A stretch of 59,283 bases of DNA from Dicyema japonicum (GCA_011109175.1 RDEW01000054.1:1-59283), one strand, 5' to 3'; counted from the stretch's first letter, positions 20,050 through 57,205 are shown. Program-made: numbers and translations. The notes: generated by a model not told the origin, from the letters alone.

Positions 20050-20672
20050 CTTTTTTTTTCTTTTTTTTTTATTTTGAATTCATAATTTAAACAATAGAAG
20101 TCAGGTAGTTGCCGCCCTCACCGCGTGGCTGTTCCCTCTCAAAATTGCGAGCGAAATTCGCTAAAATAGCCAGCGCGTTCGCGGAGATCTCCAGTGCATG
20201 AGGTGATCCGGTTTCCAAGACGTCCGAAAAACTCGAGTGTAGAGGGGGAGTAGGATCCGGAAGTCTCCATAGCAAGGGGAACAAATTTGACATCATCGGG
20301 AAGGTCGGCGTATTTAACGAGTTTGGCCTTCTCCGCCTTTACGGATGCTGAACAGGCCCTTGTAGCACTCTCGTGAAGATTTTCTGGCGAACGTGTCTGT
20401 ACATGTCACATCCCAAACCAGTGGTTTCCCGGCCTCAAATGGAAATATGGTCATCCCGTCGGTCGTTTCCCGTCACTTCTGCATAACCCGACCGGTTCAA
20501 GAATGGCCGAGTATCCAGCAGCATCCATAGCTCGCCTGACAATTTCATTCAGAGCCTTGTGCCTTGGGGATCTGCAGCGCTTCCTCCTGCAGGCGAGAGG
20601 GTGCAGGCCATAGCAGTCTATCAGGATGCCACATCGGCACGGGTGAGGTACACATTACTTTTAGTCCCAGCA
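20050..20672 (-). mobile_element. 5'-truncated CRE-clade element with poly(A) tail
   Basis: Near-identical to 40555-41145 ([25 protein letters not shown]...AILRGNSH). A-rich tail at 20050-20072. Confidence 0.9.
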
Positions 20673-24651: not shown

Positions 24652-24950
24652 CAAAAAACACCGTGATCAGACGAAAAAATTCACGTGATCTCGACCTCCT
24701 CAGCAAATCTTCGCATACTAGAACATACAGGAAGTGCCGTCCAGAGAGAACTCCACTCCATTATTGACTAATGGTCCTTTTTGGATATAATTTAGGATTA
24801 TATCTTACGCCACCAGAGATGGTGAACCACGTGAAGCCACGTTAGCAATTCAACATCTACTGGAGCCAAAAGGTTAGAGAAAGAACAGAAGAAACAAACA
24901 AAAAAAATTTCAATTCAAGTAGCCTGTGACGCCACACTAACAATTCAACC
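24652..24950 (-). mobile_element. Non-autonomous family B (leader plus HDV-like fold plus LINE 3' end), copy 2
   Basis: Collinear with 37980-38283. Structured core at 24772-24838. Confidence 0.75.
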
Positions 24951-27206: not shown

Positions 27207-27280
27207 AATTTTCGATGTGGTGCACCTTCACGTGGAGAAAATTGGATACCAGTTTCAATATGGCAACTAAAGGAACCACA
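27207..27280 (+). ncRNA. Candidate HDV-like self-cleaving ribozyme at a LINE 5' end
   Basis: P1 AATTTTC/GAAAATT; P2 TGTGGTGC/GAACCACA (1 mismatch); P3 ACC/GGA (1 mismatch); L3 TTCACGT; GG for P1.1; P4 hairpin; J4/2 CTAAAG with C at 27267. Confidence 0.7.
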
Positions 27281-27940
27281 ATTATTCCTTTCTCAACCTT
27301 TTCAACGACCTCTGGAAAGTCGGACTGGATGAGCGGGCGCATAGCTTTTGTTCCCAATGATCGAATTGGGTACTACTAATTATTTCTGTGGACATCGAAC
27401 AGAACCCCGGACTCCACGAAAATAGGAAATTCCTCAATATCATTCAATTCAACATAAATGGCCTTTCACACAAATCAACTGAACTTTTTGTATTTCAAAC
27501 TTCTCACAAAATTAATATTGCCATGCTACAAGAAACGAAACAATCCAGAAAGTCATTGCTTCCACACTACAGAGACTACTATATTTTCCGCCGTGGTCGA
27601 CCGGATTCAAACAAGGAGAAGGTGTTCTCACAAATCTATTCCATCCTCTGATACTTCCTCTCAGATACAAGCTCTGTTTGAAGATGATGATCACATCGAA
27701 CTAACTTCCGTCTTGGAGAAAATAAACCAAACTAGGTACATATTTGTGAATCTTCACATCCACCACCAAGTCCCAGTATAAAACATTACTTCTCAAAACT
27801 AACTGAATTGCAAAAGATTAAAAATGTAATAATCTGCGGAGACCTAAATGCAAAAAATCCGCTTTGGTTATTCGGGCAAAAGAGTAATGAGAGGGGTTTT
27901 CAGGTCCTCTCTCAACTAGATTTTTTGACTTTATTAGTCG
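27207..27940 (+). mobile_element. Ingi/Vingi-like LINE 5' part (ribozyme, 2A-like motif, APE)
   Basis: DIEQNPGL at 27391-27414, then IIQFNINGL, AMLQET and IICGDLNAK. Confidence 0.8.
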
Positions 27941-29239: not shown

Positions 29240-30736
29240 ATCTTAATGCAAAAGTTAGAAATCGAATCACTATAAAAGAAGTATTCATTGGAAGACATGG
29301 AAGGGGAAAAAGGAACATTGCAGGAACCTTGCTAGCTAGCTTTTGTCGAGCAAATAACATATTCCTTTGTAACACGGCCTATATGCACTCAGCAAGACAA
29401 GGAGCCACTTTGCCACTTGGAGAAGGACTATTGATAGCAGTACAGAAGCCAAACTAAAAATTGGGGAAAGTTGAGAACCTAAGACCAGTGATCTTAACCA
29501 ACAAATTACGGAAGATACTAGCCAATATTACGCATCAAAAAATTGAGGGACGCCTAGACTCGTACCTGTCGGCTTATCAAAGTGGCTTCCGCAAAGGGAG
29601 AGCAACGTCAGATGTTATATGGAGCCACAAATGGAGATATGCGACTGTTCAAAAATTTTAAATAACGACAACCATTCTGGGGATTGACATGTCAAAGGCC
29701 TTTGATTCCATCAACAGGAACAAGCTGCTGCAAATAATGGAGCACTTCTTGAAGGGCTTAACGATCAGGAAGGTCAGACACTTTTGACAAACACGAGTTT
29801 GATTGTCAGAACTGGGAAAGCTTTATTGAGGAAATTTGAAACGACAATTGGTACCCTTCAAGGAGATTCATTATCCCGATTTTGTTTATCATTTTCTTAG
29901 AGGCAGCTCTACGAGACTTGAAGCCTCATATCGGAGAAGGAACGAGCATAATAGCATATGCGGATGACGTGGACTTTATTTCGAATAACAAAGAAGAGTT
30001 AATTGCACTTTTGGAGAAAATGCCTGATAAAATGGCTGAATGGTCATTAAAAGTAAATACAAACAAAACCGAAATCACGGAGCTAAAAAGAAGTGAGGAA
30101 AGGACCGAGGAGCACTGGCGTAGATCAAAAAAACTAGGATCCCTTCTCGGTGACACCGAAGATATAACACGAAGGAAGACACTAACTAATGTCGCTTTCA
30201 ACAAAATGAAGAAAACCTGGCTTCTGCACAAAGGGTTTGACCCTAAAACTCGAATGAGACTATACAATGCCCTAGTGAGGCCAATCCTATTATATAATGC
30301 CGGTACATGGGCATGTACAGAGCAGGAACTCGAAAAGTTGAATTCTTTTCACAGAAATCATCTCCGAGCACTCCTTTCTTTCCGAAGCTTTTTCAAAATG
30401 CCGTCCGAAATCTTATACAAGAGAACAGGAACTGAGCCAATATCATGTGATTTTACTGATTCAAGATGGAGGCTGTTTGGACAAATACTTCGCCACAATA
30501 TAGGGACCTCTGCCAACACAGCAATGGAGGAGTATTTTATCTTAGAGGCTTCGCGTTTCCACGTCCGGCCAAGGACAACACTGCCAGTATCCCTAGATGA
30601 AGATCTCAGAAGGATTGGAAAGTGTTTTAAAGACGGGGATGATCTAGATATGCTACGGAACATGGCAACGGATCGAAAAAGATGGGGGATATTAATTAGA
30701 TTGTTAACTTTTCGTGTTGCACATGCTTTGTCATGA
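29240..30736 (+). mobile_element. RTE-type LINE, internally deleted (APE stub fused to RT)
   Basis: The APE piece is nearly identical to 16940-17085. It is followed by LRPVILTN, QSGFRKGR, GIDMSKAFDS, QGDSLS, AYADDVD and SRWRLFG. Confidence 0.9.
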
Positions 30737-31758: not shown

Positions 31759-32942
31759 TATTATGTAGAATCACGCTGCGTTGCGTAGAAACAATGACTT
31801 ATTTTTGTAATAATGATTTTTTTCCGCTAAGGGAATGATTATAAGCATCTATATGAAGCGCATAACGGTTTCTTCTTAGGTAGAGGGGTCGTTAATAGCT
31901 CACCATTGACTTTGTCGGTGTCGTATTAACACCACTAAGTCGTAAAGATTTAGCAATTTATTTTAAAAATTTTATAATAATATTACAAATTCGGCATTGT
32001 TCAATTTTTTTATTTTCATTAATTCATTTAGAGCCTTTCGTGAAGCATGTATTGCAAAAGTACCTAATTATTTTATAAATTATTATATATTTATTTATAT
32101 TTGGCTAACCTTGTTAAATTAAGTTTAATTTTAAATATTTTAATAAATTCAGCATTTAATCTTTTTGTCGATATTTATCCATACAAAAATCACAGGAAGT
32201 TGTAGTGATAAAGAAATGAACCATCTTAAAGACCTGTAGTAGTTATATTAATCATATCACAGAGACGTTATTCCATTACGCCAGTTCCTTCATGTATCCC
32301 ATTGAGGAAATGAATTGATACCCATTTTCTAAGCATTATTGAGAAAATTACGGTCGTTTACAGGATCCATCCACTTCTGTGCAATTTCTATGGCGTCTTA
32401 GTTGAGTCCACGTCCACTCTTTTCCTTTTGATTTAGCTCCCGTCGTTCCTTCTGCAGAGAACTCTGTAACATCGACGCCTGGTGAGAAATCCATCAGGAT
32501 TCTAGAAATATAAGCTAGTCACAACTTTATTATCTGAATTATAGATAGATTGCTTTGGGAAGTCTTCGAAAAGTACTGAGGAATTGGACGCTGTTGACTT
32601 GCTCAATCTCGACTTCATCGTCTAATCTAATATACATAGGGTACCTTGTGAAAAATTGTCGTAGGCATTCTGATCGAGGTCTATTAGCGCTGTAAGAAGT
32701 TTCCTCATTTTATAAAGAATTCCCGGTCCTGTGGTGTATTCCCTTCATCATAAGCGAGATCTTCTCAACGTTCTTTATTTCAACGACTCTAACTTTCACG
32801 CTTTGCTCGATCTTTCACAGCGTCTCTCACACTTCCTCTTTAATCTAAGTCTTAATTGTAGATACATTGAAATATGCAAATTTATCAATTTCCTCATTTA
32901 CTTTCGATATTATCGATAATCCTTTTAACTATTGAAACTCAT

Positions 32943-33255
32943 CCCGTGGCGCCATGTGGTGCTGCGTGGTTAATTGGTATAAGTTTTCTGCTTGCTTGTC
33001 TGTTCCTCCTCTCTCTTCCTATTAGAGTGGCGTCATGTGATCCACCTGTCTAGGTGCCGCCCAGTGCCCGGCCGGCATGAAAAAGGATCATTTGCTCTCC
33101 CCCACTCCACTGGAGGGGTTTTCACAACTGCATGTAATGGACGTCTTACCCTTTATGCTGATTCCGGATGGACTCTGTTTCTGTAGAAGTGGAAACTGTA
33201 TACACTTAATTAGTTGTTTACTTTAACTTCTTTCTCGGTGTGTCCGGGGTTATAA
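32943..33255 (+). mobile_element. Non-autonomous family A, copy 1
   Basis: Three copies in the window (also 20680-20990 and 49500-49739). Structured core at 33029-33090. Confidence 0.85.
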
Positions 33256-33399
33256 ATTAAATTCTCGCCACTAAGAAATTCATACGTAGCCACCAAAACG
33301 ACCGCTATTTTATTCTAAATAATTTATTCTATTTAATAATTATCTAATATATTATTACACTACAAAAGGATATACAAATTAAAAATAACAAACTTGATA

Positions 33400-34145
33400 T
33401 TTTCGCTGCAAGAGAGGTAAATCTCCTTCCATGGCTGTAGCAACTGTTCAGACACACCTAAACCGAATTTGTGACTGCCTTCTGCAAATATGTTATGTGT
33501 ATCAGCATCCAAGTCTCAATTCACATTATTCACTACGGACAGATGGTTCAAAGGTGGGCTTGAAATATCCATTGGAAACATCCCCATCCCTTCCAAGCGG
33601 ACCCAGAAGATCCTTTATGTAGTTTGCGACTCTCTGTTGACTTTCTCGAGTCACGTGGAAGAGGTGCTTGCCAAGGGTCTTCGGAAATGGAACATTCTGA
33701 ATGCGATGATAAAGAAGAGTCCTTCCCCCCCTTCCCGGCTGCTTGCGTCAGCAAGGTCTATCAACAAGTCATCGTATCTAACATTGAATATGCCTGCTCC
33801 GCCTGGAGGTTTGCGATTCCCTCTTCGAGAGTGGACTGTTTAAACTCTCTCAAGCGGAGAATTATGCACCACACGGACATCCCCATTGGCGACTTCGTTT
33901 CTGATGAGGCGACATTGAAAAATGACAGGGTTTCCTACGTTTCTGCAAGGAACTGGGAAACCCACTCAAGGAAAACGTGGCCCATGAAGAGGAATTTCGG
34001 TCGGTAATAAAAAAAGTGAATGCCGATTGAATTCCTTTGCAGAAGGAAAGAGAAGACGCTTCCGGAGTGCGGTTGGATCATCAGAAGACCAAATGAAGAG
34101 AATTCGGATGTTGTTGAAGGCTAGGATCACCTAATTAGTTAGTTT
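33400..34145 (+). mobile_element. I-group LINE RT thumb and 3' end fragment
   Basis: SKSQFTLF, LLTFSSHV and IEYACSAW. Ends in ggatcacctaattagttag, which resembles the Ingi-like 3' end. Confidence 0.7.
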
Positions 34146-34212: not shown

Positions 34213-34352
34213 GGGTGGCATAGTGGTTAGATGTCGGACTAAAGTGACTTAGGTTACGGGTTCGATTCTCGCTGCTGTTCACCTGGTGGAAGGTTCCACG
34301 CATCTACGATGCTAAAAGGGTTTTGACGAATGTCGCCGTCATCAGTGGATAC
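34213..34352 (+). mobile_element. tRNA-derived SINE-like element
   Basis: A-box TGGCATAGTGG with a D-stem and B-box GGTTCGATTC, but no acceptor or anticodon stem. A second copy lies at 38360-38500 on the minus strand. Confidence 0.6.
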
Positions 34353-37979: not shown

Positions 37980-38283
37980 CCACGTGGCACTAATGTTAGT
38001 GTGGTGCTATGTGACTACTTGAAGATTATTTGTATGCTTCTTCTGTTCCTTCTCTTCCCATTTGACTCTAAAGAGCTTGAATTGTTAGTGTGCGTCATGT
38101 GGTTCACCATCTCTGGTGGCGCCAGATATAATATAAATTATATCCACAAAGGACCATTAGTCAACAACCATCCAGAGGAGTTCCCCTGGACGGCACTTTC
38201 TTCAAGTTTGAGCATGCGAAGACTGCTGAGTGAGGCCGGGATCACCTGATTCTCTTCATTCTGACAATGACGGTGTTTTTTTG
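37980..38283 (+). mobile_element. Non-autonomous family B, copy 1
   Basis: CCACGTGG leader, structured core at 38090-38156, then ccgggatcacctga...acggtgttt matching the LINE 3' end. Confidence 0.75.
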
Positions 38284-38359
38284 ATTCAATAAATTTAATT
38301 TAAATTTAACAATTATCATCACTAATCGACGAGGAAGAACTAAGGAATGCTTTTCACTT

Positions 38360-39409: not shown

Positions 39410-41150
39410 GGCACATTATGGTAAAACTGGACATCAAGAACGCTTTTAACAGCTTAAGAAGAGACTGCATTCTGGAGGCCTGCAAGGAGAGATGTCCGTA
39501 CATATTTGAACTGGTCAATTATTCATACGGAAAACCTTCATCACTATTACACGGGGATTTCATAGTTCGATCGTCCTCAGGTGTTCAACAGGGCGACCCC
39601 CTTGGACCACTGCTGTTCTCCCTCGGCATTGAGAAAATCACGAAGCTCTCTAGATGCCCACTCAACATCTGGTACCTCGATGACGCTGTCTTAGGAGGTC
39701 CCCCGGAAACGGTCTTCCAGGACTTAGAAGTACTCACCCCCGCGCTGTCCGAGGTGGGTCTTCAGTTGAATATAAAGAAATGTGAAATAACAAACTGTGG
39801 TCTTGCTGACGATGACTTCTCTTCAATTGTTCAAAAATTTTACTCCTTGTTTCCCGATGGGATTGAAAATGAATTGATTTTTCTTGGTTCCCCGATCACT
39901 AGTAATGTGATGAAGCATGTCCTCCTTGACAAAAAAAACGACTCCTATGCGATTCGCTGGAAAGATTACAGCTGCTGGATTTCACACAGCACTATTCCTA
40001 TTGAAAAGAAGTCTCAACATCCAGAGAATCTCCTATCTATAAGGACAGCTCCATATTATTCTCAACTGGAGCTGCTAGAGAATTTTGATTTGTCTCTCCT
40101 CAGCTCGACGGAGCAAATATTTAATGTCCGATTCGTCGATGATACATGGATGCAGGCTACACTCCCAGTTAGATTCGGGGGTCTTGGAATCCGTCGAACT
40201 TTGGACGTCTCACTTCCCGCTCATTTATCATCACTCACGGCCTGAGAACCTTTGGTCAGGAGGATTCTACACTCCCCACCCGAATTCTCAACTGACCAAG
40301 AGATAATCCACGCACGAGAAGCCTGGAATGCCACCAACCTCCCCCTGCCTCCTTCCCAAGATCGCCAGCGAAACCTGGACAACTTATTATGCTGGAAATC
40401 GTTTAGACTCCTACTAGAATCTGCCAATCAGCACCGACGCGCTTGTTTGCTTTCGGGGGCTTCCCCTGAGAGCGGAGCTTGGCTAAACGCCATCCCCAAT
40501 GGAGCTTTGGGCACTTTTCTGGATGATGAATGCGTTAGAACTGGTATCTCTCTGCGGCTGGACTAAAAGTATGTGTACCTCACCCGTGCCGATGTGGCAT
40601 CCTGATAGACTGCTATGGCCTGCACCCTCTCACCTGCAGGAGGAGCGCTGGCAGATCCCCAAGGCACAAGGCTCTGAATGAAATTGTCAGGCGAGCTATG
40701 GATGCTGCTGGATACTCGGCCATTCTTGAACCGGTCGGGTTATGCAGAAGTGACGGAAAACGACCGGACGGGATGACCATATTTCCATTTGAGGCCGGGA
40801 AACCACTGGTTTGGGATGTGACATGTACAGACACGTTCGCCCAGAAAAATCTTCACGAGAGTGCTACAAGGGCCTGTTCAGCATCCGTAAAGGCGGAGAA
40901 GGCCAAACTCGTTAAATACGTCGACCTTCCCGATGATGTCAAATTTGTTCCCCTTGCTATGGAGACTTCCGGATCCTACTCCCCCTCTACACTCAAGTTT
41001 TTAGGACGTCTTGGAAACCGGATCACCTCATGCACTGGAGATCTCCGCGAACGCCGCTGGCTATTTGAGAGAATTTCGCTCGCAATTTTGAGAGGGAACA
41101 GCCACGCGGTGAGGGCGGCAACTACCTGACTTCTATTGTTTAAATTTTTT
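39410..41150 (+). mobile_element. CRE-clade non-LTR retrotransposon (RT plus RLE), 5'-truncated
   Basis: KLDIKNAFNSL, GVQQGDPLGPLLF, WYLDD, AWLNAIP, RPDGMT...WDVTCTDT and ERISLAILRGN. Confidence 0.9.
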
Positions 41151-49499: not shown

Positions 49500-49739
49500 G
49501 CCGCGTGGCGCCATGTGGTGCTGCGTGGTTAATTGGTTTAATTTTTCTGCTTGCTTGTCTGTTCCTCCTCTCTCTTCCTAATAGAGTGGCGTCATGTGAT
49601 CCACCTGTCTAGGTGACGCCCAGTGCCAGGCCGGCATGAAAAAGGATCATTTGCTCTTCCCCACTCTACTGGAGGGGTTACCACAACTGCATGCAATGGA
49701 CGTCTTACCCTTTATGCTTATTCCGGATGGACTCTGTTT
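49500..49739 (+). mobile_element. Non-autonomous family A, copy 2 (3'-truncated)
   Basis: Near-identical to 32943-33180. Core at 49588-49649 with a perfect P1 GGCGTC/GACGCC. Confidence 0.85.
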
Positions 49740-51391
49740 AACAACGTGGGAGAGAGCGTGACATAACAATTCAAATTAGAATTAATAGTTTATATTAATT
49801 TTATACATTAAAATTAATATTTTTATATTACTAAAAATTAGAATTTTAATCCAAAAAAACAATTTTCATAGATTCAAAAAATTCAAAAAATTCAAAAAAT
49901 CGATATTGCAAGTAGCGCATAGTTGCAAGTAGCGCTCGCGACAGTATATTTTTCCAGTAACTTTGTTGCTTTTGACTGGAATTTTTATTAGGTTCGTTGC
50001 CGCCAAATTAGATCCCCACGCAGCACATGCATAGCTTATTATTAGCTCGATATACTGCTTCAGAGGGTCCCGATACCTGGCGGATAAAACGGTAAGAGCC
50101 GGGACCGTTCTTCAGTATTCCCGGTTTCAATATTGGACGAATTTTTGATAGTTTCCATAAAGTATTTATGTTTAGCGATGTGTTGTAGATGATTGTCATT
50201 TATTGATGCTGGGCCCAATTGTTTCAGCAGAATAAGAGGAATTCCGTCTGGGCCACATGAGTTTGTTTTTTTGATTTGATATTGCTTTGGATACATCTTT
50301 AGGAAGGAAATAAGTCAGCGGAGCCATGTTGGATGACTTTCTCTTTATTTTCGTTTGTCTTTTAATCTTTTTATTAGGAATGTGACTGATTCAGATACAA
50401 TGTTTCATAAATTTATTGATTGAGCATTGTTCTTTGTTATCTTCGTATTCTGGGTTTTCAGACGCCTCAACATCTCCCACATTTTGGAAATTGAGGTCTG
50501 ATTAATCATGGCAACACAGATTCGCATGAGTTTCTTCCTTCGGGTGTTGTTCGTGCTTTTTGTGATCAGAATGTGACCTGATTCGATTAATGACATCTCG
50601 TGATCGATGTGTCAAGGTTATTTCTTTCCATAATTATTTTCTTTGAGTCGTATTTTAATTTTTCGTTTTTAATATATGCTTTTCTGACAAAAATGTTTCT
50701 CCCGTCAATGATTATTTGTTTAAACAGTATACAGCTCTATGGAGCAGAAATTTTTCAGTTTTGAATCAACAAAATTTGTAAGTCCGATTTGCATTTTTGT
50801 AATCATGGAAATGAATAGGCTTCGGTACAAAACGTGGCTCGCAGTTCAGCTTCATTATCATTGAATGGTGGTCGAAGGTCATAACGGACCGTCCAATTAA
50901 TGATCGGGGAAAGACTGATGTCACCATGTCCTTCGTGTTGTATGGTGTCCTAGTGTTCTTTTTCGGATTGCTGATGATTATTAAGTTTTGCATTTGGGAT
51001 AATAGCAGGTTTCCTCTGTTATCAGCGGCCTGGTAGCGGAACCAAGAAGGGTGCTTCGCATTCAGGTCTCCACATAAAAGCAAGTTCTCCAGTTTGTTCA
51101 AAGTCGATAGGTCAAAGCAGAAATTTTTCTTGCAGGAGCCCCGGGGGAGGAACATAAACATTCGCAATTTCAATTTTTCCAATGGAAGTTACAACAAAAT
51201 TCCAATTAGCTCCGTGTTCGAGTTTTCCATTAGGCTCTTTTAAGGAGAAGGGTTCTCGAGGTATTTTATTCCTTTCTCACAAGAGTCAGTAGACCCCCTC
51301 CTTGGCCAGATGAACGGTCGGATCTTATTGTGTTGTCGGCAATCTTTTCTCTGATCCCGTTTATGTTTACGCTCTGGATTGTTAACTTCTT

Positions 51392-51415
51392 TGGGCCTGG
51401 ATTTTGTTCCACGTC
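51392..51415 (-). other. 2A-like ribosomal skipping motif (DVEQNPG|P)
   Basis: LRLLTSGDVEQNPGP lies immediately before the APE domain and matches the D(V/I)ExNPGP consensus. Confidence 0.85.
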
Positions 51416-51565
51416 TCCTGAGGTCAACAGTCTCAATCGATAGAATGTTCCAACATTAAGAGAATGCCGTCCGTGGGAAGTCCTCTGGTTGGTAGGGAGC
51501 AAATGGTTCTTTTTAGATATACTTTGGGACTATATCCGACGCCACCAGAATCGGTGAACCACATG

Positions 51566-53697
51566 TTATGTTATGTTGTCCAATTAAGTCGTGTCCGAAC
51601 CTTGGAGATCTCATGAACGAGTTTCCTCCACTCTCCCCGATCCTTTGCAATTTGGAGTAGCCTTGATATAGGCATTCCCGTGAACTCTTTTACCGTGGAT
51701 AGCTACCGAGTCCTCGGTCGACCAGGTCTTTTCTTCCCAGTAATATTGCTCAGCATAATGGTTCTTTCCAGTGAATCAGAGCGGACAACATGCCTAAATA
51801 ACGCCAATCTGTGTTTTACGATTCTTCCCTCTAGCGAAATGTCAGTCTCTACCCGTTTGATTACATTGATGGTTGTTATTTTGGAGGTCCAAGGGATTCT
51901 TAGTAACCTCCTCCAGCACCACAGCTCAAAAGCATTAATTCTTCGCCTATCCCTTTTTCAATGTCCATGATTCTGCGCCGTATAAAAAAACCGGGAACAC
52001 GATTGCATTAACTAGTCTGCATTTGGTCCTTAAGCAAATATCTTTGTTTTCCAAACTCTATTCATTCTCTGGTAGGTCGTCCATGGCAATTTGCCTCTTG
52101 ATTTCCAGGCCTCCGTCACCATTCCGATTAATTAGACATCCCAGAAAGACAACATTATCGCAACTCTCTATTTTCTCATTCCCAATTTTTAATTCCATTA
52201 TTAGCAGTCGTCATAATTTTGGTCTTTTTGATATTTAGCATTAAACCAAAGACGGCGCTCTCGGTCTCTGAATCTTAGAATCACTTCCGTGAAACCATCC
52301 TCTGTTTCAGCCAGTATCGTCAGCATAGCGCAAATTATTGATGTTCCTTCCTCCAACTTTAATCCCGTTATTTGATACAGTATCCAATTTAGTCATGATC
52401 ATTTCGGCATAAATATTGAATAGGATGGGAGATAATAAGCATCCTTGTCTTACTCCTTTACAAATTTTGAATCGATCGACATCTCCATACACTGTTTAAT
52501 AATAGCTTCTTGGTCCTATAAAGAGATTTGATAAGCAATATCACAGCTTGTCATGTATAACGGAATCAAAAGCCTTCCGATAGTCAATAAAGCACATGTA
52601 TACACTCTTTTGGGATTCATGGGCTTTCTCCATAATCCACCGGACATTTGCTATATGGTCACGTGTGCATCGTCCCTTCCTGAATCCTGCTTGGACATCT
52701 GGTAGAATCATTCGGCATTAGACGATGTTGTATTATCTTTAGAAGTATTTTGCTGACGTGGGGAATTAAGGCTATTGTACGATAGTTTTAACAGTCCTTG
52801 CTATCCCCTTTTTTCGGTATTGGAATAAATATAGATCTTTTCCACTCACGTGGCCAAATACCAGTTTCCCAAATTTTTTGACATAGACTGGTGATAGCTG
52901 TCACCGGTATAGCCTTCAACAATTCGCTGTTGTAAATCCCCGTTGCCTTGTTCCCCGTAAATTGCCGTGTAGCCCACACGCATTCCTCCTCAAGGATTTT
53001 ATCCCCTTCACCCAACGTAATCTTTTTAGTTGTAAATACGCATTCCTAGTGTGACCTCTCTTATAGTCATCTTCCATTTTTTGCAGTGTAACCTCCAGTA
53101 GTCTTCTTTATCCTTCCTGGCTGCCTTTTTGAATTCAGAGTTAAGTTTTCTTGTCTCGTCTATATTCCCAGAAACTTTAGCAGCTTTATGAGCCTCAGCA
53201 ATGTTTAGGGTGTTGGCAGAGAGCCACTCAGACACTTGGCCGGCGTTTTGTATTTGACATGTTGTATTTCAGCCTTCCTGATAACCAACTGCATATCATT
53301 CCATAATTCATCAGGCCATCCTTCCGTTCAAATCCAGTAATCCAATATTTTGCTTAACTTCCATTGCCTATGCTGATGGTATGTTTGAGACATCGAATTT
53401 CTTTACTCGGGGGTATTCCAAGTGTTCTGAATTTCGTCCTAATTTTTGCAACAAGTAGCTGATGGTCTGTTCCACAGTCTGCCCCTGGATATGTTTTGAC
53501 GGCTGTTATAGAGCTTTTCCAACGTTTGGCGCACAAAATATAGTCAATCTGGTTACTAGACATTCCATTAGGCGACGTCCAAGTGTATAATCGTCGTTTG
53601 TGCTGTTTGAACCATGTGTTAGTTATCTGAAATCCATTTTCCTGACAGAATTGGACCAGTCGATCCCCAGAATCATTTCTTTAAAAAAAGAAAGAAA
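51566..53697 (-). mobile_element. RTE/BovB-type LINE, 5'-truncated, 11-bp TSD
   Basis: QIDYILC, GADCGTDH, WPREWKRS, GVRQGCLLSP, RYADDT and AFELWCWRRLLRIPWT. (TAACA)n tail. TGAACCACATG at 51555-51565 and 53698-53708. Confidence 0.9.
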
Positions 53698-53960: not shown

Positions 53961-55283
53961 GGAGTGCGGAAAAAAAGTCAAGTGGAAAAAAGGTCAAGCG
54001 GAAAAAAAGTCAAGTCCGTAAGCGGAAAAAAAGTCAAGCGGAAAAAAAGTCAAGTTGTCTTTTTTTAGTTTATATCGCATTTTTGTGATACTACTAGCAT
54101 CTTTTAATTTTTAAAAATTTTTTCAATACTTGACTTTTTTTCCGCTTGACTTTTTTTCCATTTTTGAAAATTTTTCCCTTATAAATTTTCGAAATTTAGC
54201 GCAAAATGGAAAAAAAGTCAAGTCCGCTAACGAAATCACGGACTTGACTTTTTTTCCGTTTATAAATTAAGATTTTTATTCATGATCGTTTCATTTAAAA
54301 GTAAGCGAGTTTAGAATAACAAATTATTTAATAGTTAATTTTGGCTAATGTTAATGAATTAAAATGTTCCGCCACAACTAAAACTACACGTGGTGCAAAT
54401 AAATTCTAAAAATAATTTTTTCTACTTTTAAAATTTTTTTTTAAATGTTATAAACATATGATTTTTATTTAACGTGAATCAAGGGATTATTTAATGTGAA
54501 TCAAAAGAATATTTAATATTCCATGCAATTGCTTTTAGGGCTTCTCCTACTGTTTTTTTCCGTCCTGGCGATCCAGACATATATTTAAAAGTTTTTTTTT
54601 GTCTATCAATCTTTTTTTATTTGTTCTTGTTGAAATTTTTTTTCCAAAGGAATTAAAATCCGTATATTGATTAAGTCAAAAAGATTAAACCAAAGCGAAA
54701 AAAGTCAAGGTCAAAAAGATTAAACCAAAGCGAAAAAAGTTAAGTCAATTTTATTATATTAGGAATCCTTGGCCCCCAAGCAGATGAGTTGGTTCGTAAG
54801 ATCGGTTCCATGATTCAAGCTGTGACCAAGGATCCGCAAGAGACTGGTTGGTTCCGAGAACGTATCTCGTTGGCTATTGTTAGGGGAAATAGCATGGCCA
54901 TTCAGATGCCTTAATTTAATTTTTATTCATTTGATAATAAAAAAAATCTTTATTATTACCTTGAAATTCTTAAATTGATTTAGTCAAAGCGATTATACCA
55001 AAGCGGAAAAAAAGTCAAGTCCGTGATTTCGTTAGCGGACTTGATTTTTTTCCATTTTGCGCTAAATTTCGAAAATTTATAAGGGAAAAATTTTCAAAAA
55101 TGGAAAAAAAGTCAAGCGGAAAAAAAGTCAAATATTGAAAAAATTTTTAAAAATTAAAAGATGCTAGCAGTACACAAAAATGCGATATAAACTAAAAAAA
55201 GACAACTTGACTTTTTTTCCGCTTACGGACTTGACTTTTTTTCCGCTTGACTTTTTTTCCACTTGACTTTTTTTCCTACAACC
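53961..55283. mobile_element. Foldback/MITE-type element with ~300-bp repetitive TIRs and an 8-bp TSD (Merlin-like by inference)
   Basis: GG..CC termini; AAAATTGG at 53953-53960 and 55284-55291. The arms are built of GCGGAAAAAAAGTCAAG units in both orientations. Confidence 0.9.
54755..54915 (+). mobile_element. CRE-clade 3' end inside the MITE
   Basis: LGILGPQADELVRKIG...WFRERISLAIVRGNSMAI*. Confidence 0.7.
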
Positions 55284-55423: not shown

Positions 55424-57205
55424 ATGAACAGAAAACATTCACGGGAAATTATTACATCCCTATTAAAAGATGTGGAATGTCTAAAAGACAATTCAAGGAT
55501 GTATGCGGCTTTGCGGCTGCTGCGGACAAAGAAAGGACAAAACATCCTTCACATCAAAGACAAAGATGGAAAATTCGTGGGTAACCCGAAAGAAAAAGCA
55601 GAATTGATTGCACGACACTTCGAAACACTGTTGAATAAAGAAAATAATGACTTTCCCCCTTTCCAAGGAAAAGCAAAGGCGCTAAAAATCCCAATCACAG
55701 TGGAAGAGGTGGAATTAGCGATAAATAAACTGAAGAACAACAAGAGTGCTGGGCCGGACAACATAAGCCCTGAGCTCCTAAAATATGGGCCAAAAAAACT
55801 TAGCGACACAATTGCAAAAACCCTAAATGCCGTCTTTGAAACTAATACCGATCTAGGACTTGGAAATGGATTATTAATACCCATACAAAAACCGAACAAA
55901 TCAAAAGGACCAGTAGAAAATCTCCGCCCGATAATACTTCTGAATTCGATACGCAAGGTGCTGGCAAACATTGCACTAAGCCGGATAAAGGGTATGGCGA
56001 ATCTATACCTACCAGCAAGTCAAAGTGGGTTCCGAGAAGGGAGGTCTACGGCAGACATTGTATGGAGCCACAGATGGCGCTGCGCAACGCACCAAAGATT
56101 CAAGAGCGCAACAACCGTGTTGGGAATAGATCTCTCCAGAGCTTTCGACTCAATAAACAGACAGAAACTGATGAATGTGCTTGAGCAAATATTGGATGAA
56201 TCGTCGGTTAGGATAATCAGACTACTACTTGCGAACACAAGACTATCTGTGAGGACAGAAGGAGCAACTTCCCGCAGTTTCAAAACAACGATTGGGACAC
56301 CCCAGGGTGATTCCCTCTCCCCTTTACTATTCACCATATACCTTGAATCTGCACTCCGCGACCTCCGTAAATGCTATATAGGAGACATAGAAGAGACATC
56401 TTATGCGGATGATGTGGATTTTGTATCACGGGATGTGACCGCACTCCAACACCTGCTAGAAAATGCACCTGCGGAGCTTGAGAAATGGTTTCTCAGCGTA
56501 AATGTTAACAAAACTGAAATTACGGAAATCAAAAGAGAAGACGATATTACTCAAGAAAGATGGAGACGTACTAATAAGCTCGGCTCTCTACTAGGAGACG
56601 CTGAAGATGTACTGAGGAGGAAAACACTGGCAAATGCGGCAATGGCTAAACTGAAGAAAGGATGGCTAAGGGCCAAAGGACTTGGAATTGACATCAGATG
56701 CAGGCTTTACAACGCGTTTGTGAAACCGATCCTACTGTATAACGCTGGGACATGGGGAAGTTCCTTCAACGAACTATTGAAACTGGATTCGTTCCATAGA
56801 AGGCAACTAAGAAGCTTACTCGGAATGGAGTGGCCACGTAGAATATCAACCACTGGTATCTACAACAAGTGTATGTGTTCCTACATCAGCAAGGATGTGA
56901 TAGATGCCCGGTGGAGGCTATTTGGGCATGTACTAAAAATGAACCCGGACGCACCCGCTAACAAAGCGATGGAAGATTACTTTGACAGATGCGAAAAACC
57001 CTTCCGCGGACGACCTAGATCGACACTTCCGACAGCCCTAAACAAAGACTTAAATCGTGTGAGAAAAAATTTAAAGACGGGAGACGACCTGGACGAATTG
57101 AGATCACTCGCATTCGACAGAGGAAAATGGAAAAGACTAACTATAAATATTGTTTCTTTGAGTGTTGCACGCTATAATCATTATGGCTTTCGTGAAAGTG
57201 CTTAA
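55424..57205 (+). CDS. Uninterrupted RTE-type reverse transcriptase ORF (593 aa, endonuclease absent)
   Basis: KSAGPD, LRPIILL, QSGFREGRST, DLSRAFDS, GTPQGDSLSPLLF, YADD, KLGS and ARWRLFGHV. Confidence 0.9.
   Translation: MNRKHSREIITSLLKDVECLKDNSRMYAALRLLRTKKGQNILHIKDKDGKFVGNPKEKAELIARHFETLLNKENNDFPPFQGKAKALKIPITVEEVELAINKLKNNKSAGPDNISPELLKYGPKKLSDTIAKTLNAVFETNTDLGLGNGLLIPIQKPNKSKGPVENLRPIILLNSIRKVLANIALSRIKGMANLYLPASQSGFREGRSTADIVWSHRWRCATHQRFKSATTVLGIDLSRAFDSINRQKLMNVLEQILDESSVRIIRLLLANTRLSVRTEGATSRSFKTTIGTPQGDSLSPLLFTIYLESALRDLRKCYIGDIEETSYADDVDFVSRDVTALQHLLENAPAELEKWFLSVNVNKTEITEIKREDDITQERWRRTNKLGSLLGDAEDVLRRKTLANAAMAKLKKGWLRAKGLGIDIRCRLYNAFVKPILLYNAGTWGSSFNELLKLDSFHRRQLRSLLGMEWPRRISTTGIYNKCMCSYISKDVIDARWRLFGHVLKMNPDAPANKAMEDYFDRCEKPFRGRPRSTLPTALNKDLNRVRKNLKTGDDLDELRSLAFDRGKWKRLTINIVSLSVARYNHYGFRESA

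Follow-up and report, generated by a model that had tools for sequence, protein, structure and literature searches.

A known role of HDV-like ribozymes is to process the 5′ ends of LINEs. In one of the closest described systems, that of Trypanosoma cruzi, the first 77 nt of the Ingi-clade element L1Tc contain an active HDV-like ribozyme, which it shares with its short partner NARTc (PMC3185411). In the Ingi/L1Tc arrangement a 2A sequence immediately precedes the endonuclease, an order also found in an Ingi element of a mollusc, Aplysia (PMC3708506). For R2 elements, folds in which the L3 G or the catalytic C is missing have been found not to cleave (PMC3774820, PMC3414825). LINE 5′ sequences also occur within SINEs, as 5′ parts of Vingi and RTE LINEs form SINE middle bodies, a position in which a ribozyme would truncate the SINE (Kojima 2018, PMC5786205); that study contains no report of an embedded LINE part keeping an HDV-type fold, nor of the state of its catalytic positions.

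We analysed a stretch of 59,283 nt of Dicyema japonicum DNA (GCA_011109175.1 RDEW01000054.1:1-59283), hereafter the window, which holds copies of a short repeat, family A, with an HDV-type fold behind a leader. Family A is comparable to L1TcRz/Pr77 and NARTc in that the HDV-type head of a single-ORF 2A LINE is shared by short derivatives (PMC3185411, PMC3708506). However, the L1Tc/NARTc fold is the exact 5′ end of the element and cleaves at +1, whereas that of family A lies 88 nt inside; moreover, the L3 of family A is atypical, the catalytic C is missing in a third of the family, and the LINE in question is likened to L1Tc by its 2A/endonuclease arrangement. In its succession of head, LINE 5′ part and tail, family A resembles SINE2-1_ACar, SINE2-1_AMi and the Ceph-SINEs (PMC5786205), but those have tRNA or 5S heads and the family A leader is without Pol III boxes. 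The LP-SINEs of gastropods and bivalves likewise contain a LINE 5′ domain, of ~70 bp, and are probably not Pol III elements (Matetovici et al. 2016, PMC4758252); there the LINE domain is the head, whereas in family A it is internal, behind a hairpin and pyrimidine tract whose start duplicates the P1 region. With R2 5′ ribozymes and R2-derived elements family A shares a variable P4, a P1 of 6-7 bp and possibly distant P1 strands (PMC3774820, PMC3414825), but R2 is site-specific and relies on cleavage from the 28S co-transcript, while family A is dispersed and keeps its upstream bases. The presence of a LINE 5′ part inside a SINE body is thus already known from the literature. New in the present case are the letter frequencies across the family (a majority with C and a U subfamily of about one third), an A/G variant in P1 that leaves pairing intact, the lack of Pol III signals in the leader, and a duplicated P1 segment with a hairpin at the 5′ end.

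Repeat copies and LINE ends in the window

The three family A copies with 62-nt cores reported in a preliminary description of this DNA were all recovered. By BLAST inside the window, 32945-33180 of the full-length copy A1 and 49504-49739 of copy A2 are 95% identical, and copy A3 (20979-20687, minus strand) is 81% identical to A1 across 305 nt; A2 is without the last ~72 nt of the family. The copies and the parts of A1 are as follows.

32941-33252, plus strand: family A copy A1, full length, with leader, core, LINE-5′UTR-like stretch and tail (within-window BLAST and contig edges)
49500-49739, plus strand: family A copy A2, core 49588-49649, with every helix perfect and a T as the catalytic-position letter
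20990-20687, minus strand: family A copy A3, core 20901-20840, J4/2 CAAAAAA
49378-49489, plus strand: left arm of the direct repeat flanking A2, with the right arm at 49740-49853 (112/114 nt, near-perfect)
32943-32969, plus strand: 5′-terminal hairpin of A1, 11-13 bp with several G.U pairs (leader folding of A1, A2 and A3)
32970-33028, plus strand: remainder of the leader, pyrimidine-rich, with a T4-T6 run (at 32984-32987 in A1)
33029-33034, plus strand: P1 5′ strand GGCGTC, with the expected cleavage site 5′ of 33029; no family variant at 5% or above
33035-33037, plus strand: J1/2 ATG, preceding the P2 5′ strand
33038-33043, plus strand: P2 5′ strand TGATCC, covarying with family B and the LINE
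33044-33055, plus strand: P3 ACC, L3 TGTCTA and P3 GGT; P3 invariant, L3 of 6 nt
33056-33061, plus strand: P1 3′ strand, GCCGCC in A1 and GACGCC (45%) or GGCGCC (51%) in the family
33062-33064, plus strand: CAG linker, whose AG could pair with CU of L3 as a 2-bp P1.1
33065-33077, plus strand: P4 hairpin TGCC-loop-GGCA (folding); loop letter 33069 is A in 92% of the family
33078-33084, plus strand: J4/2, TGAAAAA in A1 and CGAAAAA in the family majority; 33078 is the catalytic-C position
33085-33090, plus strand: P2 3′ strand GGATCA
33091-33252, plus strand: LINE-5′UTR-like stretch (TTTGCTC...), then family-specific tail, ending before an A-rich/TAAAT repeat (alignments)

A second repeat family, B, and two LINE 5′ ends were identified as well.

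37994-38290, plus strand: family B copy B1, core 38091-38156
24653-24942, minus strand: family B copy B2, core 24838-24772
51390-51564, minus strand: decayed 2A-LINE 5′ end (LINE1), core 51564-51504 without the P1 5′ strand
27215-27420, plus strand: second, diverged 2A-LINE 5′ end (LINE2), with a 2A variant NPGL at 27391 and a degraded fold

In a search for target-site duplications, the flanks of A1, A3, B1 and B2 gave no repeat above chance, and only that of A2, at 112 nt, is clear. Ten extra bases, TTTTCGATTT, separate its left arm from A2, which sits antisense within the decayed 2A-LINE. The long direct repeat, the extra bases and the missing 3′ ~72 nt make an arrangement atypical for target-primed insertion; it may represent filler DNA where a duplication was joined, or a target-site duplication of unusual length. 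The two B copies end in a T6-T7 run (ACGGTGTTTTTT), at 38276-38283 and at 24665-24660 (minus strand), which would suit a Pol III terminator, unlike the leader with its lack of Pol III boxes. Directly after the T run of B2 there is a possible flank repeat of 13 nt, with 11/13 positions identical, which is not significant.

Abundance and edges of family A

Public assembled contigs from four runs of one organism were aligned to 32750-33450 at a minimum of 80% identity, and 26,790 contigs aligned in the largest run. The summed word depth reaches 1.1-4.8 million across 32942-33253 as against ~130 in unique flank, and the copy number of family A is, as a rough estimate, ~10^4. The edges of the family are sharp, with the depth stepping from ~130-1000 to over 1 million; they lie at ~32941-32945 and at 33252, and beyond the latter the consensus is A-rich. 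At the other end, contig sequences running past 32945 terminate in ...AGCCG next to the element; the rest of these loose ends is AT-rich and unrelated. The dominant 5′ edge, at 32945, was seen in 82 contigs of the largest run, and none of the loose ends listed for that run, all with at least 26 contigs, placed a 5′ edge at P1 (33029), which leaves room for a minor class of copies that start there. The flanking direct repeat of A2 also encloses the leader. Given this enclosure and the sharp 5′ edge upstream of the leader, the 88-nt leader belongs to the mobile unit. The preliminary description had noted ~85 conserved nt upstream of P1 in all copies, and indeed 84-88 nt are common to all A copies and lie inside the family edge. 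Within the family, variants are few and mostly transitions. Since family A is young, conservation within it is uninformative on selection.

The core fold, its covariation and the role of chance

The 62-nt core runs in the order P1, J1/2, P2, P3, L3, P3′, P1′, CAG, P4, J4/2 and P2′, which is the HDV nested double pseudoknot topology. In A2 all helices are perfect (P1 GGCGTC/GACGCC, P2 TGATCC/GGATCA, P3 ACC/GGT and P4 TGCC/GGCA). A1 has a single mismatch in P1, a private C at 33057 where the family has A or G, and A3 has one mismatch and one G.U pair, both in P1. The J4/2 reads TGAAAAA in A1 and A2 and CAAAAAA in A3. At 33057 the A and G alleles make up 45% and 51% of the family, and either of them pairs with U33033; this is the only high-frequency variant within a helix.

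Across six copies (A1-A3, B1, B2 and LINE1), 93% of the cells are paired, as compared with 27-52% after sliding of the 3′ partners. The pseudoknot helix P2 is paired throughout (100%) and contains two covarying pairs, one changing from A-U to G-C and the other from C-G through U.G to U-A, the helix being TGGTTC/GGACCA in family B and TGGTTC/GAACCA in the LINE. P4 is a wholly different, unrelated helix in the two groups, an AU-rich 8-bp hairpin in B and the LINE and a GC-rich 4-bp stem in A. The claims of the preliminary description that P2 covaries between family A, family B and the LINE, and that P4 differs in sequence yet still pairs, hold on both counts. The covariation score was reached by 16 of 500 shuffles, with only three independent lineages contributing; covariation in P2 is real, but statistically modest at that number of lineages.

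The HDV-type topology, likewise proposed earlier, stands by three measures: the pairing just described, a structural descriptor, and the strength of the helices. The descriptor (P1 of 6 bp, P2 of 6 bp, P3 of 3 bp and P4 of at least 4 bp, with no mismatch) matches A2 alone in the real window, as against ~1.3-1.9 matches in each shuffled window. The pair score of P1, P2 and P3 of A2, which are G+C-rich helices, is 40, against a maximum of 36 among 99 shuffled windows. The bare HDV topology is not rare in such AT-rich sequence, and it is the quality of the helices that is unusual. With a covariance model constructed on the six cores, each of them scores at E<1e-17; in the window it found no further copy, and among its other, faint matches are the beginnings of both B leaders. 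When the cores were folded as nested MFE structures, the z-scores were weak, from -0.3 to -1.7. None of the Rfam HDV-family models reached its gathering score in the window, and the HDV, CPEB3 and drz models had no match at E<=10 on A1, A2, A3 or B1, which is weak evidence as these models are narrow.

It could be that the likeness to HDV is coincidental and that the core is a structured retroposon domain unrelated to HDV-type ribozymes. One to two descriptor matches per shuffled window would be in line with this, as would the Rfam results and the weak z-scores of the MFE folds. We nevertheless regard coincidence as very improbable, because helix quality exceeds that of the shuffles, P2 is fully paired with its two covarying pairs, C-G-A-A follows P4 as in HDV, and the module stands at the head of a LINE, just ahead of the 2A and endonuclease, as HDV-like ribozymes do in other LINE clades (PMC3185411, PMC5786205).

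Relationship to a 2A-LINE

The core of LINE1 is followed, ~70 nt on, by the 2A motif DVEQNPGP and then by the beginning of an endonuclease. By BLAST, B1 and the LINE1 5′ end are 76% identical over 121 nt, and the family A core with the TTTGCTC that follows it also aligns to LINE1, the shared stretch running ~60 nt past the core. The fold thus derives from a LINE 5′ end, in which core and ~60 nt downstream head a 2A/endonuclease LINE. By analogy of its 2A-before-endonuclease arrangement, this LINE may be called Ingi-like. The fold similarity of LINE2 (27215-27290) is marginal and was missed by the six-core covariance model. None of the LINE 3′ ends within the window is similar to the tail of A or B.

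The LINE1 head, which lacks the P1 5′ strand, adjoins the 3′ end of another LINE at 51565-51750 (minus strand); the ORF tail of the latter reads ...AKDRGEWRKLVHEISK..., followed by an (ACATAAC)2 repeat. The junction represents either an insertion into the tail of this older element or a 6-nt 5′ truncation.

With this origin, one could suppose that the fold has no role in the retroposon, being a recently acquired piece of LINE 5′ UTR that has not yet decayed, with helices that reflect selection on the LINE only. The few, mostly transitional variants within family A are what a young family would be expected to show, the covariation arises solely between the families and the LINE, and A1 and A3 already have helix mismatches. 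On the other hand, A and B, whose flanking parts are ~77-81% diverged, both keep all helices, and they differ from each other by compensating P2 changes and the complete swap of P4. The sole in-helix variant of high frequency, that at 33057, moreover pairs either way. A fold without any role therefore appears doubtful, and we would assign it a small probability.

The catalytic position, L3 and P1.1

At 33078, C holds 61%, 66%, 73% and 63% of the depth in the four runs. The T allele, to which A1 and A2 belong, takes 27-39%; a C is present at the start of J4/2 in A3, B1, B2 and LINE1. At 33079 the majority letter is G, with G>A at ~6%. The preliminary description had read the TG and CA forms of J4/2 as decay products of an ancestral CG, and the majority letters at both positions bear out that ancestral CG. 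As to the T, ten other CpGs were counted by reading in the element, of which nine are unlisted at the 5% threshold and one, at 33073, stands at 9%. T at 33078 is far commoner than changes at these other CpGs, which argues that it is a subfamily marker rather than scattered decay. From the allele frequencies, the situation is best read as the amplification of a large subfamily that lacks the catalytic C and includes A1 and A2.

In the HDV and CPEB3 ribozymes, the J4/2 that follows P4 is C-G-A-A. The family-majority J4/2, CGAA(AAA), is the same as this junction. C-to-U at the catalytic position abolishes cleavage in HDV-type ribozymes (PMC13635239, PMC3774820).

L3 reads TGTCTA in all three A copies, ATCTCT in B and GATTCT in LINE1, with no G near its 3′ end, and has no family variant at 5% or above. 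That L3 of family A is only 6 nt long and lacks the conserved G was thus correctly described, and family B and the LINE likewise have no G in the 3′ part of this loop. The term "rewired core" used in that description fits L3, which is atypical, but not J4/2, for which the family majority is CGAAAAA. The G in question, G25, which pairs with U20 close to the metal site, matters elsewhere: G25A abolishes cleavage in the C. briggsae ribozyme (PMC13635239), and among R2 elements a fold without the L3 G did not cleave, while the effect of a G-to-A change in the jewel-wasp R2 ribozyme bore out how important this base is (PMC3774820). Between CU of L3 and AG (A and B) or GG (LINE1) one can draw a 2-bp P1.1; this candidate uses the 3′ half of L3, unlike HDV, in which the 5′ half is used. 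Much variation in the core is tolerated by known HDV-like ribozymes, as that of L1Tc is active with a 1-bp P1.1 and that of the jewel-wasp R2 with an odd L3 spacing (PMC3185411, PMC3774820). Together, the family-majority C-GAA in J4/2, the intact P1-P4 and the possible P1.1 make family A compatible with a slow ribozyme.

From that, one could propose that the fold is an active self-cleaving variant of the HDV type, slow or regulated, with a 6-nt L3 lacking G25 and a P1.1 formed through the 3′ half of L3, and that sufficient uncut RNA would remain for copying. C-G-A-A in the majority J4/2 and perfect P1-P4 helices would be expected of it, a CU/AG or CU/GG P1.1 is drawable in all three lineages, and upstream sequence is known to modulate HDV-like cleavage (PMC3185411). 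We consider such a variant unlikely, as the U-bearing subfamily (27-39%) has been amplified, the leader is kept as the dominant 5′ edge, and the B repeats also keep, and duplicate, ~15 nt upstream of P1. No Rfam HDV model matched, and mutation of the G that L3 lacks has abolished detectable cleavage or cut its rate ~1000-fold (PMC13635239). A rather low probability also attaches to the proposal that the ribozyme is active with a reorganised L3 and that its cleavage is restrained by the leader, so that it would be a 5′ processor in the LINE and a non-cutting scaffold in the ~10^4 repeats.

The leader

The A and B leaders are homologous. The hairpin at the start of the leader includes the sequence GGCGCC-ATG-TGG, which nearly repeats P1-J1/2 together with the first bases of P2: in A1 and A2, 12 of 13 nt are identical between leader start and inner P1, a match reached by 3 of 1000 shuffles. 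In family B, the first 24 nt of B2 repeat the 24 nt around its own P1, with 20/24 nt identical, including 15 nt upstream of P1, which none of 1000 shuffles reached. A 10-nt duplication in family A turns the leader start into a stable hairpin of 11-13 bp with several G.U pairs. This hairpin (32943-32969, 49502-49529 and, on the minus strand, 20988-20962) has a GTGG motif with a 10-nt period, is strand-specific by its G.U pairs, and is absent from family B; in A3, two G-to-A changes convert G.U pairs to A-U.

The repetition raises the question of whether the true P1 5′ strand could be the GGCGCC of the leader (32948-32953), in which case the leader would be a long J1/2, comparable to those of R2 and mosquito HDV-like ribozymes, and the cut would remove only ~7-9 nt. 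Beyond the repetition itself, which covers P1-J1/2 and the start of P2, the leader GGCGCC would form a perfect helix with the P1 3′ strand where this reads GGCGCC (51% of the family), and the leader motif of B1 gives better pairing than does its inner P1. Partners of P1 can be separated by 23 to >700 nt in R2 (PMC3774820), and long inserts in J1/2 have been described (PMC4908430). However, the consensus extends ~7-9 nt upstream of the motif (...AGCCG before 32945), and this would be lost by such a cut; in family A the motif is locked in the stable 5′ hairpin, and the argument from the subfamily with U in place of the catalytic C applies here too. A P1 formed with the leader is accordingly highly unlikely.

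An upstream promoter in the leader, as suggested in the preliminary description, is not supported by our searches. No Pol III B box with up to 2 mismatches is present in any A or B leader, and A-box matches occur at chance level. The T4-T6 run inside the A leaders, and a T8 run in B2, would hinder Pol III, and the leader had no Rfam small-RNA match at E<=10. ARAGORN detected no tRNA in the leader. A possible 10-nt identity to the 5′ end of tRNA-Arg is a lead only, and a tRNA head was rejected on the negative ARAGORN and box searches. In these respects family A resembles a non-autonomous LINE derivative or an LP-SINE (PMC4758252) more than a classical SINE.

An attenuator helix between leader and core was also considered, as full-length MFE folding pairs the U-rich tract of the leader with P4, J4/2 and the P2 3′ strand. 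It was rejected, as the leader-core duplex energy does not improve on that of shuffled leaders, with a z of ~0 in A1 and A2, -1.6 in B1 and +1.5 in B2.

A probable LINE-derived pseudoknot within a retroposon

Taken from the sequence data, our preferred reading, held with moderate confidence, is that family A contains a LINE-derived HDV-type pseudoknot within a high-copy, LINE-dependent, non-autonomous retroposon, in which self-cleavage is absent, weak or dispensable. The body of the retroposon holds the first ~120 nt of an Ingi-like 2A LINE, including the HDV-type nested double pseudoknot. In the LINE lineage the fold is maintained through compensating changes and, to judge from other LINE clades, presumably serves to trim transcripts at their 5′ end. 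Within the retroposon it lies 88 nt inside the element, behind the 5′ hairpin and the pyrimidine-rich tract, and the RNAs that were reverse-transcribed into new copies would have been uncut at P1. A large subfamily would have spread with U replacing the catalytic C. It is these two points, uncut copies bearing the leader and the U subfamily, that suggest that self-cleavage is absent, weak or at least dispensable here. The preliminary description had offered two alternatives, a new catalytic variant and a ribozyme scaffold that lost cleavage. Nothing speaks for the new catalytic variant as such, and a scaffold that has lost cleavage, or does not need it, fits better because the leader is part of the mobile unit, no large class of copies starting at P1 is seen among the listed loose ends, and the U subfamily has been amplified.

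The anatomy, the homology to the head of the LINE, the P2 covariation, the abundance, the keeping of the leader and the frequency of the U allele are all observed. As to why the fold persists, it may serve as a mimic of the LINE 5′ RNA module for LINE proteins, or the module may simply be young. The 5′ RNA pseudoknot of R2 binds the R2 protein. Under the preferred reading, family A would be a concrete and very abundant case of the conflict posed by a ribozyme in a SINE body, resolved toward not cutting. It would, if true, provide a natural example of a ribozyme scaffold outliving the loss of catalysis, as well as a means of learning which feature at the RNA 5′ end is recognised by the LINE machinery. 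For annotation, structure-based ribozyme searches in cephalopods would return thousands of these copies, which should not be counted as active.

Other searches and nearby features

Two metagenome pattern scans yielded nothing related; of their 62 pattern matches, none had a covariance-model match. In the metagenome Ga0209536, seven contigs (L006, L007, L013, L020, L026, L044 and L057) share a repeat of ~120 nt containing CATGTGATTCACC......GGTGACG. This repeat was rejected as a relative of the fold, as it has no P1/P2 partners and no covariance-model match. A homologue search with a 67-aa 2A/endonuclease piece found nothing.

The window also contains an intact reverse-transcriptase ORF of 593 aa at 55424-57205 on the plus strand (RVT_1, E 5e-33). 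A protein look-up of this ORF gave no record. Its relatives are at most 50% identical, several of them also have a LINE exo/endonuclease domain, and those named include no octopus sequences. Inverted repeats lie just upstream of the ORF (53968-54216 / 55045-55276).

A perfect Pol III A box (TGGCATAGTGG) is found 43 nt before a B box with one mismatch (GGTTCGATTCT) at 34216-34269 on the plus strand, and this segment probably heads another SINE, one of tRNA origin. A second A box without mismatch lies at 29405-29415 on the minus strand. Finally, a sequence of ~570 nt is present twice in inverted orientation, 20 kb apart (20084-20655 and 40571-41146, with 96-100% complementarity), and one arm of this pair is located directly 3′ of A3.
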